The notes under the pieces were generated by a model. The model was given only the letters and a program-made list of their open reading frames with translations. It was not told the DNA's origin and did not search any database. A stretch of 64,000 nucleotides of DNA from Tubulanus polymorphus. Lineage: Eukaryota > Animalia > Nemertea. Position 1 is the first letter of the stretch, and each line of letters begins with the position of its first letter. This document shows, one piece after another, positions 10,001 through 22,000 of the stretch. Made by a program: the position numbers and the translations under genes. The stretch lies in NCBI RefSeq assembly GCF_964204645.1, contig NC_134034.1, forward strand, positions 10,180,962 through 10,244,961. Direction: 5' to 3'.

Positions 10001-13000
10001 TCTCACCTACTACAATATTGTCATCTAGCTCTATAAAACAGGACTCGAATTGATCAGATTTAAAAATACATATTATTATGTACATAAATGGCTACACCAC
10101 CGCCCTGGCTTTTTTCTCTGTGTTTTTCAACTAGACTATAACCAGGTATTTGAACTTTACAAACATTGTCGTCACTAGTAACGTTTCACATAATAGAATT
10201 AAACGTAATTTACATGACTGCTGGAGAAGTCGCATGGAAAGAACTCTTTCCATGCGACTTCTCTAAAAACCAGATCCTGAGATTTTGCGACTTTTATTTC
10301 GAAAAAAACTTTTTCAAAAAATATTGGGTTCTCAAACTTCTAGACGGTAATAATATTTCTTAGATCTGTTATCTTACTACAGAGACTGTGTATATTAAGT
10401 TGACGAATATTGAACTTAGAATCATCGAATTTGATCTTACTTATATGTCATACATATCTATATAAGGACAATCATTATTCAAGGGATTAGAGTCGATTAA
10501 GTCGTGATCTAGTAAGTAATCAGAATTATTCTGAATGACCTTGATACGGTCTGTTACATTTATATTACCGAGACACGTGTACGGTGTTACGGTCGCTCTC
10601 TATTTAGTACGGTCTTGAATAGAATTCTGAAAGACTATAAAATAATTTATTCAATAGTCAATAGTTGGCCTACAATTAGCAGTGGAACGCTATCAGCTAT
10701 TCAACAGTCATTATTGTTTCATCTTTCAACACCTGTTGGCACGCAGCCAGCGCAGCGCAGCGTTCAATGCTTATGTAATACTATAGTCTCACACACAGAC
10801 ACACTTCCCTGCTGTAGTAGCAGTGATCAATAGAGAACATATATGGCTATTAATACATGCGCTGTATTGTAACCATCCTCCCTCTGCAGGGACTCGAACC
10901 TGATGGCATCGCTACACTCAGCCACAGCACGAACCCCTGCATCAGTAGACCGGGTGCGCAGGTACATGCGCAGCTTTCCGAACGAAAACTGGCGGCACCG
11001 ATCAGATTGCTCGTTGTAAAATCGTTGAGGCAAATTTCAAGGAAGAACTATAAATGGGAAAACCCGGGCTAAAATAAAACTGGATTTCTGATTGGCTAAA
11101 AATCACATCATCTGAACTGCGCATGTATCTGCGTACACGGTCGATTATGGCAGGGTTTCGTGCCGTGGCAATCTCGATGCCATCAGGTTCGAATCCCTGC
11201 CGGGGGAGGATGTATTGTAACACTACTGCGACGCACGCGGAGAGCTCTGGCCCGCGTCTTATAAATTTGATCCAAGGATAATAAAAGCTTTAAATTACGA
11301 GTATAATAAGACCTTTATGAATCATAAACTGTAATAAGGGGCTATCAATTAATAAAGCAATTAGATTTAGAATAAAAACCGCTATCATCAGAACCAAAAA
11401 CTCTAGAATCTTTGATGATCATAAAAACATCAGCTTTTTTCATGTTGCGTTATTCTTGGAAAAATACTGACAACCTCAAGAAAATACTGACAAACTCGAA
11501 GAATTGTACTGACAACATCTTTCTGAGGTTGGCAGCTATGTATATAATAAATAGGCTCATGTTTATTCTTGGACATTTGGCTTTTTGGTGGTCTTTTCAG
11601 CAGAGGGAGGCGTCTCAGTAAGGGATCTGTCTTTACGTTTCTTTCCAGTGTTACCCGTCTGTGGTGTCGCACAGACATCGCTTTCGCCGATTCCTTCAAC
11701 TGCTTCGCAGAATTTCTTTATCAGAGCTAACTTTCCGGTTTCACTAAGATGGATGCCACTGATCATTCTCTTATGACGGTTACCGGCGCGCGAGATATCA
11801 CCATCCGAAATATGTTAATGTTTGGCAATAATAAATGATAAAACACGTATCACAAGTAGTCTTTGAAAAAAGATTTGTATTGCGAATTTCTACCTATTAC
11901 GCCAAAATTCAAATTATTTTCTCGAATTTCGACTTATTATGTCGAATTTCGAGTTTTATCTTCATGCCGAATCTCGAATTTTTATGTCGAATTTCGTGTT
12001 GATTATGTCGAATTTCGACTTATTTTCTAGTCGATTTATCATTTCGAAATTCGACATAAAAATAACTCGAAATTAGACATAATAACTCGAATTTCTATAT
12101 AGAAATTAGTAGAATTTCGACATAATTAACTCTAAGATCGACATAATAAGTCGAATTTCGACATAATTAACTCTAAATTCGACTTATTACGTCGAATTTC
12201 GAAATATCGTATGTCACCAAGGGGCTTCCGTATTATTCTGCTCCTTGAACAGAGCACAGTAGTACTGCAAAATATAAACTAGGCGGAAGTTATAGAAGTA
12301 ATAGAAGTTAACCCTTTCGGACATGAAATATTGTCTTCATCGTGGTACTTATGAGAAGTTATTAGGAAGATTATACTTCATGTCCCTAAAAGCCTAGCGC
12401 ACATCGACACTGCGATTGGAGACAACTAGTTGCTACCGAACGATTACCCCGCGCACATCGAAATCTAGTTACAACCGGTCAGTTGCAGCAACTGCATGGC
12501 GCGTGTCGATCGTCAAGATCCAGAGCGCACACATCGACGGATATGACTGCGATTGAGTACAACCAGTTGCTCAAAATTAGAACATGGGCAACTGGCTGGA
12601 ACTGGAGATAGATCGACGCTTACCAATTGTAAGCTCGCTCACATCGACACATTCAAGCAACTGATCGTATCCAGCCAGTTGCTCTCATGCGCCGTAAACT
12701 GCCAGTAATAGGGGTAATAGGCTTTCATACCAAAGGTCGAACGGTCGAGCCCATTAAAAAACGAAAAAACATAAAAATAATAACAATTTCTACTTGAATT
12801 ACTCGCGAAACTCATAAAAATGAAAAATAAATTCTCACACGCTCGAATTTATTTTTCATTTTTTACTCGCTAAAAAGTAACGAGTAATTAACGAGTTGTT
12901 TGAATTGATATTTTAAACATATTTCAATATTCATATTTGTATGAGTTAGATTTTTAAATATAAAAGTGTGAGTAAAGTGTGAGTGAAATAATTCATATTT

Positions 13001-19000: not shown

Positions 19001-22000
19001 ATAGCATTATATTATCGCAAAATATATCTGATGTTTCAATTAATTCATTATTTTCAGATTTATAATACTTATTTATATTTACTCCTGAAATATCTGCTAA
19101 ATTATTGTTAACAGTTAAATAATATAATATTGAATTTATATATTTATTACTCATGTCTTTCGCGGGAACTTTAATTAATCTTGTGCACATTTATATATCA
19201 AATTTTTATTAAAATAGGTTAAAATTCAAAAAGAGTTAGAGTTCGCTGAAACCTTACGCTTTAAAATATTTTTTTACCCTTATTGGTTTTATAACTATAC
19301 ATTTTAGATCTAATACCAATGAACTCTATCATTTCTTCACCGCCTAATTCATCTTTGAATTTACCGGGAACTTTTTTATTATCATTGCTAAACAATTCAT
19401 GATCTTTAGGATAGTTACTGAAATCAAAATGATGATTTAATATTTTTAAATCATCAGTTATGTTATCACTTTTTATCTTTAATATGTGTTATGATATTTT
19501 GATTTAAAATGGTGTGATTTATTGCTGCGAGTATAATATTTTCCACAATTACATAAAACGCTTTCATTAGGATTATATTTAGGCGCAACAATTTCATCAT
19601 CAAAATTACATTGAATTCTAATATCTTTATAAGAATTATTATTATCTAATTCACATTGAATTCCAATATTTGATGAATTTTCATTATAGATAATTTGTTT
19701 ATTATCAAAATTGAAATAATATAATTGTCTTTTTTCAATTCTTAAGTTAATCAAATCATTGTAATCTTTTGAAAGTATTATATCATCATTTCTTTCATTG
19801 AAAGGAGTTTTAAGAATATTAATTATGTTTTCATCTAAAGTTCCTTTAAAATTTAAAACTGTATTGAATACTTTAGGACTTTTAACACCATTATCAAAAG
19901 TATCTACTAGTTCAGTAATTAAATATGTTTCATTTGATAATATTTGATTAATCATAGTTATGTTATCGATTTTATAATACCTTGCGGACACTAAATTTGT
20001 TGCCGAAATATAATTTTTAATGTAAAACTGTGAAAATGATTTATTGGTTTCATTGATTTCGATTTTAAAGTTGGGTTCTTCTTCTTTCTTCATTTTTATA
20101 ACAAAATTTTTATTAAAACTCATTCAAATATAAATATTCACTGTTTTAAATATGAATTATTTCACTCACACTTTACTCACACTTTTATATTTAAAAATCT
20201 AACTCATACAAATATGAATATTGAAATATGTTTAAAATATCAATTCAAACAACTCGTTAATTACTCGTTACTTTTTAGCGAGTAAAAAATGAAAAATAAA
20301 TTCGAGCGTGTGAGAATTTATTTTTCATTTTTATGAGTTTCGCGAGTAATTCAAGTAGAAATTGTTATTATTTTTATGTTTTTTCGTTTTTTAATGGGCT
20401 CGACCGTTCGACCTTTGGTATGAAAGCCTATTACCCCTATTACTACTGCCTTGCAACTAGTTGTCTCCAATCGCAATGTCGATGTACGCTAGGCTTTAAG
20501 CTGAAAAAAAGTTGAAAGGGGAATAAACGTTGCTCGAAACATACAAAATTAAACGTTGCTCAAAATATATCTCTTCTATTAAAGAATGTTTTATCTTTGA
20601 CTGAATCATCGTTGGATTTCTCTCGTCCTCCATCTTACACGGATAGTGTGTATATTCTCGACTCACTGGTCTGGTATTATCTTCACCCAGTCCTGGCAGT
20701 GGTTGTATCTACAGTGATCTCCGCTGCTCTACGATCTTAGTGTAACCCATCCTCCCCTGGCAGGGATTCGAACCCGATGGCATCGAGATTGCCACGGCAC
20801 GAAACCCTGCCATAATCGACCGTGTGCGCAGATACATGCGCAGTTCAGATGATGTGATTTTTTATTTAGCCAATCAGAAATCCCGTTTTATTTTATCCCG
20901 GGTTTTCCCATTTATAGTTCTTCCTTGAAATTTGCCTCAACGATTATACAACGAGCAATCTGATTGGTGCCGCCAGTTTTCGTTCGGAAAGCTGCGCATG
21001 TACCTGCGCACCCGGTCTACTGATGCAGGGGTTCGTGCCGTGGCTGAGTGTAGCGATGCCATCTGGTTCGAGTCCCTGCAGAGGGAGGATGAGTGTAACC
21101 ACCCAGACACGTTCACTCAAATTGTATCTGTATCTGAAGTTATTAGGCCGCTTATGGTCCTTATGAGGCGCTATGGCGGTGATGTCGCAGTTAGCGTCGC
21201 ACTGTGGTACATCAGACACTAAGGTTCTTGGTGAAGTATTATCGAAAATATTTTTCAGTGTATCGCGCTACCGGAGACATAGGACACGGAAAAGGCAGCC
21301 GTTGGATCGGCGATTTTGATCTTTGCCATACAATCAAAACTGCTCAGTACTGCTCATCAATAGCCGGCGGTGGAAAATCTAGAGTAAGTAACGTTTGTTT
21401 ATGATTTATTCACTGTGAAGGAAATTATAGTTTTTCGGTTTAATTTATTCGCATAAAATACTAATGTATGTTCGATAGTCTGTGACACCTCCTCTCCGCG
21501 CATTTCAATTTATAATTTCAGTTGCGAACCAGCTCATTATACATTTATCATAATCGTTGCATCGATCTGTTTTCGTATTCGGAAACAAATGTTTAATTCA
21601 CTGTCACTTGTTTGTTAAGCGCGTCCCTATCACAACGGTAGGCCGAACGATAATGATTGCACTATACTGTTAATGCGACCCGAAGAAGGAACCGAGATAT
21701 CGTGGGAGAGCGAATCCGTCCTCAGCTCCGCACAACGACACAAATTGAATTTTGACCCGACACCAAAATAGATAAACAACTCATGTGTATATAATTGAAT
21801 TTTGACCCGACACCAAAATAGATAAACAACTCATGTGTATATAATTTGAATTTTGACCCGAGACCAAAATAGATAAACAACTCATGTTTATATAATTTGA
21901 ATTTTGACCCGAGACCAAAATAGATAAACAACTCATGTGTATATAATTTGAATTTTGACCCGAGACCAAAATAGATAAACAACTCATGGGTATATATTCC

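Follow-up and report, generated by a model that had tools for sequence, protein, structure and literature searches.

In a 64,000-nucleotide stretch of Tubulanus polymorphus contig NC_134034.1 (hereafter the window) we find two palindromic insertions, here called E1 and E2, that share inverted AGT...ACT ends and are each bounded by a different, exact 6-bp target-site duplication (TSD). They are two insertions of one family. The most novel part of this finding is the protein family of the E1 gene ORF758 (open reading frame of 758 codons), whose product very probably has a fold like that of the TATA-binding protein (TBP) and is probably a tyrosine nuclease resembling the Rep_trans replication initiators. 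The ends of both elements resemble those of Mavericks/Polintons, a remnant of a polymerase gene lies beside ORF758, and the family may owe its integration to an element of that class acting in trans.

Two fold-back insertions with the same ends

The two elements and their parts occupy the following positions of the window (strand is given where one applies).

12704–20444: element E1, fold-back, 7741 bp, ends AGTAAT...ATTACT
12698–12703: E1 TSD ACTGCC, left copy, 6 bp
20445–20450: E1 TSD ACTGCC, right copy, 6 bp
12704–15792, plus strand: E1 left inverted arm, 3089 bp
17358–20444, minus strand: E1 right inverted arm, 3087 bp, bearing the intact gene copies
15793–17357: E1 unique core, 1565 bp; the boundary between right arm and core lies inside ORF758
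12704–12876, plus strand: terminal ~173 bp of E1, ~91% identical to E2, mirrored at 20272–20444
51784–54194: element E2, near-complete palindrome, 2411 bp, ends AGTAAT...ATTACT, 24% GC
51778–51783: E2 TSD AACGCT, left copy, 6 bp
54195–54200: E2 TSD AACGCT, right copy, 6 bp
51784–52125: E2 nested mini-palindrome (terminal 149 bp, 44-nt spacer, inverted terminal 149 bp), mirrored at 53853–54194
52967–53010: E2 central spacer, 44 nt, built of a 24-bp tandem repeat

Both flanks of E1 were read directly, which confirmed the AGT...ACT termini and the exact TSD, identical in its two copies, that a preliminary description of this DNA had reported; the gene-bearing inverted arms of about 3.09 kb and the core of 1.57 kb given there were found as well. 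The arms are 99.5% identical, with 13 substitutions and one 2-bp indel between them, and their outermost 321 bp contain no substitution at all. E1 differs strongly in composition from the rest of the window (22% versus 39% GC), and its terminal 28-mer was absent from all of 100 shuffles of the window. From right to left the order is ORF214, a PolB-like stretch, ORF758, ORF72, ORF104, a tandem repeat and a hairpin; this is the order described before, in which ORF104 had been called ORF100 by counting from its first ATG. Because the inner boundary of the left arm cuts ORF758, this arm is a duplicate that arose secondarily and is truncated.

E2 was revealed as a low-GC patch at 52–54 kb in which the AT skew switches mid-patch, as it does in E1. 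Its arms differ by three substitutions and one 1-bp indel, and it is palindromic at two levels, that of the whole element and that of the mini-palindrome at either end. The termini of E1 and E2 are ~91% identical over ~170 bp and the elements have in common 587 bp of internal sequence, 96% identical, that spans the start of ORF214. E2 is without ORF758, yet its ends are kept. With the same ends as E1 and a separate TSD, E2 therefore identifies a transposing family and not an artefact or a one-off event. The preliminary description had looked to further palindromic copies with different 6-bp TSDs for support and had raised a one-off rearrangement as the contrary outcome; E2, with its TSD AACGCT, is such a second fold-back insertion inside the same window, and the one-off rearrangement is not upheld.

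Fold-back chimeric reads are a known artefact of some long-read libraries, and palindromes of this kind could in principle come from such reads or from the assembly. However, the arms have diverged in each element, a mark of palindromes that are genuine and not recent; E1 and E2 each possess intact termini with an exact TSD on either side; and E1 has its 1.57-kb unique core, so that we consider an artefactual origin extremely improbable.

ORF758 combines a predicted TBP-like fold with Rep_trans-type motifs

ORF758 is present twice in E1.

16914–19190, minus strand: ORF758, intact; N-terminal ~300 residues a predicted TBP-fold, Rep_trans-like putative nicking domain
13958–15792, plus strand: partial left-arm copy of ORF758, broken by one frameshift, with no new stop codons and its 3' end lost at the arm boundary

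At the base composition of E1 the expected probability of 758 consecutive open codons is ~1e-31. The long ORFs of E1 are open in the standard code, and a ciliate or mitochondrial code was rejected on that ground. Beyond the N-terminal domain ORF758 contains a coiled coil (residues ~457–504) and a conserved beta-rich C-terminal module (~670–757); conservation in the family is concentrated in a core of residues 130–410 and in the module at the extreme C-terminus.

AlphaFold models of the whole protein and of residues 1–300 reached predicted local distance difference test (pLDDT) values of 87.6 and 90.8, respectively, the latter with a predicted TM-score (pTM) of 0.87. For both models the best Protein Data Bank (PDB) match found with Foldseek was the staphylococcal initiator RepDE (4cwc; probability 0.97, E 9.6e-4). 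This was the only match under E 0.001 for the 1–300 model and was followed by RepDN, RepSTK1 and several TBPs. Matches in BFVD were to replication proteins of Inoviridae, viral TBPs and large subunits of early transcription factors. The Rep_trans fold has the same topology as TBP (PMC4797284), and from these models ORF758 very probably has a TBP-like fold.

Rep_trans enzymes carry their catalytic tyrosine on a strand, and three carboxylates on separate strands hold the metal; their published signature consists of an Asp (N'), R-x-D (motif I), T/S-x-Y/E-x-G (motif II), Y-x-K-x-x-E (motif III) and W/L-x-R-x-E (motif IV) (PMC5714925, PMC4797284). As comparators we used pT181 (accession given in PMC10135026) and eight annotated plasmid Rep_trans genes, amongst which D46, R140, D142, D146, T176, Y178, G180, R189, Y191, N192, K193, E196, W211, R212 and E214 are invariant. 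Amongst 82 sequences of the ORF758 family (~20% identical to ORF758) Y223, K225 and G265 are invariant and D59, D177, D181, R219, K221, N224, R268 and E270 nearly so. The groups D59, D177-x3-D181-F, K221-x-Y223-N-K225 and L266-x-R268-x-E270 occur in the Rep_trans order, each on its own predicted strand. D59 thus has a strand to itself, and D177 and D181 form the same D-x3-D-F as D142 and D146 of RepC. The counterpart of motif III, K221-I-Y223-N-K225, falls on predicted strand 218–224 with a basic residue two before the tyrosine; that of motif IV, L266-I-R268-I-E270, falls on strand 266–273, R268 and E270 being invariant or almost invariant. In its best path hhalign matches D177/D181 to D142/D146 of RepC and K221/Y223/N224/K225 to R189/Y191/N192/K193, and leaves the motif IV block unaligned owing to a longer insert.

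On the strength of the predicted fold and these motifs we think it probable that ORF758 is a Rep_trans-like tyrosine nuclease. Several results weigh against this assignment. The Foldseek TM-scores are low (0.26–0.30, with a root-mean-square deviation of 9–10 Å), and TBP- and ACT-type folds score similarly. At the motif I position ORF758 has an Asp where Rep_trans has the Arg of R-x-D, and between motifs I and III the ORF758 family has no conserved counterpart of motif II. Alignment by hhalign to the eight plasmid Rep_trans genes is not significant (P 0.04–0.15, probability 0.4–1.2%). Searches of Pfam, PHROGs, NCBIfam and the PDB with ORF758, as a single sequence and as a profile, were blank, and neither ORF758 nor 62 of its relatives matched Pfam PF02486 (Rep_trans) even at E 10. 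One of the 62 relatives does match phrog_702, a phage 'replication protein', at E 1.6e-6; it was not among 20 members scanned one by one. The Rep_trans-like nickase proposed in the preliminary description thus holds as regards predicted fold and conserved motifs, and fails as regards significant sequence similarity and Pfam membership: ORF758 is not in Pfam Rep_trans and amounts at most to a new family within that structural superfamily.

The structural matches also suit a protein of another kind, a TBP-fold DNA-binding protein such as a giant-virus-type transcription factor, which would not be a nuclease and would leave the element without a replication function. TBPs score equal to the Rep proteins, or better by TM-score, the viral TBPs and early-transcription-factor subunits are amongst the BFVD matches, and a significant sequence match between ORF758 and Rep_trans is lacking. 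The most conserved residues of the family (Asp, Asp, Arg/Lys, Tyr, Asn, Lys, Arg and Glu) nevertheless follow the Rep_trans catalytic order at near-spacing, and a plain DNA-binding saddle would need no such set. We therefore regard a purely DNA-binding ORF758 as very unlikely.

The ORF758 family is at home in eukaryotes

An exhaustive search (E < 0.001) recovered at least 125 cluster representatives of the ORF758 family, which ranges in composition from AT-rich to GC-rich. Four close relatives are 39–52% identical to ORF758, and one member amongst the 62 relatives bears a chromodomain. Twenty further clusters were looked up. Three of them are RefSeq gene models located on a chromosome of 84 Mb in the mealybug Planococcus citri; the remaining 17 are on contigs of 2.8–18 kb, mostly 3–6 kb, that are largely filled by the ORF758-type protein. 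A scan of 185,579 species genomes of bacteria and archaea, with patterns from the close subfamily only, yielded no relative, and a tblastn search of all plasmids with the catalytic region of ORF758 returned nothing relevant. Because of the P. citri members and the empty prokaryotic scan, the family is to be considered at home in eukaryotes, animals included.

The P. citri members P0009, P0015, P0083 and P0172 belong to the neighbouring loci LOC135836840 (three isoforms) and LOC135836843 of one chromosome. In two sets of relatives, P0003/P0136/P0137 and P0004/P0138/P0139, one long ORF (1090 or 716 residues) on one contig is frameshift-split on the sister contig. Two ORF758-type copies on a relative's contig were considered as a sign of a palindrome and rejected, since the pieces sum to one ORF and are frameshift splits. 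Sister contigs are nearly equal in length (3723 versus 3724 bp), a hint of complete small units, and P0137 terminates in a C2H2 zinc finger.

A remnant of a protein-primed-type polymerase gene

Between ORF214 and ORF758 lies a short open stretch, again in two copies.

19264–19476, minus strand: remnant of a family-B (protein-primed type) DNA polymerase gene, ~71 open codons
13672–13884, plus strand: left-arm copy of the remnant, with identical peptide and six clustered synonymous differences

The rest of the polymerase gene is absent on both sides, so that more than nine-tenths of the ancestral gene is gone. Relatives of the remnant are short predicted proteins 57–73% identical to it, one of them from the haptophyte Prymnesium polylepis. 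A cluster-mate of 224 residues, P0140, is 67% identical over the shared part and carries the motif C sequence D-T-D-S ~20 residues upstream of that part. Because P0140 has motif C in this place, the 71-codon stretch, as judged from sequence, comes from a family-B polymerase, from the part immediately following motif C, a part that we take to be characteristic of the protein-primed polymerases found in Polintons and related elements. Another cluster-mate, P0143 (1021 residues), was rejected as a polymerase relative because it is an unrelated O-mannosyl-transferase-like protein. Against the polymerase assignment it must be said that the remnant, alone or as a profile, has no sequence match in Pfam or the PDB and that no named polymerase was amongst the matches of the remnant searches. 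A full polymerase is not encoded, since no E1 ORF matches a Pfam polymerase and the 71-codon remnant is all there is. The polymerase vestige noted in the preliminary description is accordingly real by virtue of its relatives and of motif C in P0140, and is unseen by Pfam.

Six of the 13 substitutions between the E1 arms fall within a 25-bp span of the remnant (13782–13806 and 19342–19366), in the part encoding its best-conserved peptide, a clustering with a chance probability of ~6e-8. All six are synonymous third-position changes and hence both arms encode the same remnant peptide. A small local inversion was rejected as the cause of the cluster. We read the 25 bp as one short conversion patch, apparently from a diverged homologue whose peptide is constrained. 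If this reading is true, the patch is indirect evidence of a further polymerase-type copy elsewhere in the genome.

Outside the patch at least five of the seven arm differences are non-synonymous, which gives them a neutral look, and for this reason the E1 and E2 insertions are probably decaying relics.

Relation to known elements and enzymes

Mavericks/Polintons have AGT/ACT end motifs and perfect 6-bp TSDs (PMC8097293), rve integrases typically yield TSDs of 6 bp (PMC12220804), and Polintons by definition encode a polymerase and an integrase (PMC5499653). E1 resembles them in its AGT...ACT inverted ends, its exact 6-bp TSD, its intron-less genes and its protein-primed-type PolB remnant. It differs from them in lacking the polymerase gene, rve integrase, capsid, ATPase and protease, in having 3.09-kb gene-bearing arms and in possessing a Rep_trans-like gene; moreover, the published vertebrate Maverick motif has AGT twice (PMC8097293), whereas E1 and E2 have it once. 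Scans with Pfam and PHROGs upheld the earlier statement that integrase, capsid, ATPase and protease are missing, with no match in any E1 ORF, and the same scans gave no helicase domain; an rve integrase had no match in any ORF of E1 or E2. Since it has neither polymerase nor integrase, E1 is not a Polinton by definition. Among known elements it comes nearest to reduced derivatives of the Polinton class that depend on a helper, of which transpovirons are an example.

Transpovirons are similar to E1 in being ~7 kb long, AT-rich and linear-type, with terminal inverted repeats and no structural genes, and in having a dead polymerase relic, small zinc-finger proteins and a dependence on another element (PMC5499653). 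They differ in having a Tlr1-type superfamily 1 helicase as a fusion with the inactivated polymerase and in travelling with giant viruses. In E1 there is no helicase but a Rep_trans-like gene; its polymerase remnant stands alone, and the element is located in a cellular chromosome with a 6-bp TSD.

ORF758 shares with Rep_trans (pT181 RepC/RepD, RepSTK1; PF02486) and Phage_CRI the predicted crescent fold, the strand tyrosine in basic-x-Y-N-K, D-x3-D-F and L-x-R-x-E. In contrast to those proteins of ~310 residues, it has 758 and includes a coiled coil and extra C-terminal domains, and its replicon is linear, integrated, eukaryotic and provided with inverted ends where theirs is a circular plasmid or phage. 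The recently described Rep-Arvir proteins (DUF7845) of archaeal pleolipoviruses and plasmids likewise have a TBP fold and a kinship with Rep_trans at the structural level only, and were recognised by the same Foldseek pattern, with RepDE 4CWC, Inoviridae initiators, viral TBPs and the BFVD entry A0A2N9QVX7 in common (PMC13107129). They also pair the initiator with a nearby DNA hairpin origin, for which E1 and E2 have a candidate. Rep-Arvir differs from ORF758 in the motif around its tyrosine and in being archaeal, and none of the 62 ORF758-family members matched a Pfam domain of the Rep_trans or Rep-Arvir type.

E1 is further comparable to copy-back or snap-back defective genomes and to self-complementary genomes of the parvovirus type, in which an inverted end surrounds a unique loop and the turn is beside a hairpin. 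Such forms are known as replication by-products of free viral genomes; E1, by contrast, sits in a chromosome between the two copies of a TSD, and its arms have since diverged. Foldback (FB-type) transposons differ in that their repeats are short tandem subrepeats, whereas the arms of E1 are unique, gene-bearing sequence and its only tandem repeat lies in the core. In the literature searched we found nothing linking Rep_trans-type enzymes to Polintons, Mavericks or any eukaryotic element, which agrees with the earlier view that no element with this combination of features has been described.

Hairpins and the possible origin of the palindromes

Two hairpins and a tandem repeat are found in E1.

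12816–12863: subterminal palindrome, 48 nt, 19-bp stem and 10-nt loop, mirrored at 20285–20332, conserved in E2
15797–15868: perfect hairpin, 72 nt, 33-bp arms and 6-nt loop, 4 bp from the junction of left arm and core
16139–16219: tandem repeat of a 34-bp unit (2.4 copies), within the core's non-coding part

The 48-nt palindrome sits ~112 nt inside each end in E1 and E2 alike. Folded as DNA it has an energy of -14.9 kcal/mol (z -8.7; none of 200 shuffles was as good), and it may be considered a candidate origin or nick site. The 72-nt hairpin folds at -29.7 kcal/mol (z -11.7), and we propose it as the site of a template switch.

Taken together, these observations could be accommodated as follows. 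An ancestral protein-primed polymerase gene would have been reduced to ~71 codons beside ORF758, and ORF758, as a putative tyrosine nicking enzyme, would start replication of the element, possibly at the 48-nt hairpin. Since the family encodes no integrase, insertion would proceed in trans, through the 6-bp staggered cut of an rve-type integrase from an autonomous Maverick/Polinton-like element. The palindromes would arise by template switching, either as copy-back during replication or as inward spread of a terminal repeat, provoked by hairpins or short repeats. In E1 a switch beside the 72-nt hairpin may have copied the outermost 3.09 kb, together with part of ORF758; E2 would require at least two switches. 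That ORF758 nicks DNA, where replication begins, that a helper provides the integrase, and when and how the palindromes formed are all inferred from the features described above, and we judge the joint account of a non-autonomous, virus-like, Maverick-ended family with trans integration, a Rep_trans-like initiator and palindromes made by template switch to stand at an even chance of being right. To be set against it are the lack of any helper element in the 64-kb window, which has no other low-GC block, and the fact that some other DNA transposon superfamilies also make 6-bp TSDs, so that 6 bp is not specific to rve integrases.

A further difficulty is that copy-back before integration and repeat expansion after it yield an identical final structure. 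The palindromes might accordingly have arisen in the chromosome, where recombination or gene conversion starting from a short terminal repeat copied the other end inward, much as repeats expand in other genomes that have inverted repeats. Such a history fits the layout of the arms, which extend inward from the extreme termini and stop at an arbitrary point within a gene, and the separate 25-bp conversion-like patch shows that conversion acts on E1. On the other hand, two independent insertions within 64 kb are both palindromic, E2 doubly so, which suggests a property of the family, and the E1 junction is only 4 bp from a perfect 72-nt hairpin. For these reasons we find a post-insertion origin rather unlikely; if it were true, the fold-back form would be uninformative on how the element replicates.

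The template-switch account with a helper integrase must also be compared with a self-sufficient family, in which ORF758, as a dimeric tyrosine nuclease whose metal is held by carboxylates, is itself the integrase or transposase, produces the 6-bp stagger, joins the ends and also mobilises E2 in trans, the Maverick-like ends being a coincidence or a relic. ORF758 is the only enzyme-like gene of E1, E2 has kept the ends without it, and the 3–6-kb contigs of the relatives leave scant room for a second large gene. Rep_trans active sites, in addition, resemble the ones found in topoisomerases of type II, enzymes that cut both strands with a stagger (PMC4797284). Nevertheless, AGT...ACT ends together with a 6-bp TSD are the exact published Maverick signature (PMC8097293). 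The polymerase remnant, too, points to Polinton-class ancestry. Rolling-circle nucleases and their transposons, moreover, are not known to leave a TSD of fixed length, and we hold self-sufficiency to be quite unlikely.

ORF214 and the small genes of E1

The remaining genes of the two elements are the following.

19479–20123, minus strand: ORF214, intact, with a CCHH zinc-finger-like C-terminus
13025–13669, plus strand: left-arm copy of ORF214, intact, with two non-synonymous differences
53082–53732, minus strand: ORF216 of E2, intact homologue of ORF214, 82% identical
52245–52895, plus strand: left-arm copy of ORF216, broken by one frameshift, with no new stop codons
16638–16856, minus strand: ORF72, small protein with a hydrophobic stretch
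16288–16602, minus strand: ORF104, 100 residues from the first ATG, with a weak C2H2 zinc-finger match

ORF214 is the sole gene kept in both E1 and E2. Between it and ORF216 the last ~50 codons are very diverged with the Cys/His pattern retained, and the first 160 codons differ by four synonymous and six non-synonymous changes (dN/dS 0.32, numbers too small for significance). ORF214 had no relatives among proteins of its length range, no PDB match and none among the collected relatives; it may bind the element ends. No relatives of ORF72 were found in Pfam, in PHROGs or among the collected relatives. ORF104 matched the zinc-finger family PF00096 at E 5e-4, under the gathering score.

Genomic surroundings

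The insertion site of E1 is a host repeat. Several ~60-bp units of this repeat, ending CAAC(T/C)AGTTGC, lie to the left of E1 (12386–12700), with one unit inverted just past the right TSD (20453–20500; 94% complementary over 48 nt). Upstream of the site, at 11873–12206, is an array of 20–41-bp tandem and inverted repeats on TCGAATTTCGAC-like units, and to the right of E1, at 20791–21044, is a pair of 53-nt inverted repeats, 85% complementary and 148 nt apart, that resembles a miniature inverted-repeat transposable element.

Elsewhere in the window an ORF with a weak Exo_endo_phos_2 match (9039–10085) is the remnant of a retrotransposon without long terminal repeats. Two tandem copies of a Core-2/I-branching enzyme (PF02485) at 56482–58010 and 61846–63635, with ORFs split into 272 + 156 and 271 + 241 residues, are host genes, probably with an intron or a break. 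Outside E1 and E2 the observed/expected ratio of CpG is 1.22, without depletion. Runs of (TA)n of 88–147 units at ~5337, 23525 and 48102 and many tandem repeats mark the window as repeat-rich eukaryotic DNA, and tRNA and Rfam scans of it gave no match.

Implications

In the literature searched, TBP-fold initiators are described solely from plasmids, phages and conjugative elements of bacteria and, since April 2026, from viruses and plasmids of archaea (PMC13107129, PMC13595969); the Rep_trans enzymes themselves are regarded as apparently confined to bacteria (PMC13107129). If our assignment is true, the ORF758 family extends the Rep_trans-type enzyme class to the third domain of life, insects included. 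A bolder interpretation, to which we give somewhat less than even weight, is that ORF758 and its relatives, 125 or more, constitute a third, eukaryote-resident branch of TBP-fold rolling-circle endonucleases beside Rep_trans of bacteria and Rep-Arvir of archaea, and mark a class of replicons of ~3–6 kb in animals and other eukaryotes. Some of these, E1 among them, would have acquired Maverick/Polinton ends and be inserted by the integrase of a helper, with replication begun by their own nickase at a terminal hairpin; fold-back copies would then be natural by-products of nicking replication.

Within the Polinton-centred network the joint account, if true, would amount to a swap of the replication module, from a protein-primed polymerase to a nicking initiator, with the polymerase scrap as its trace. 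E1 and E2, with their clean TSDs, indicate that palindromic derivatives can still integrate, and this bears on the origin of helper-dependent satellite-like elements.

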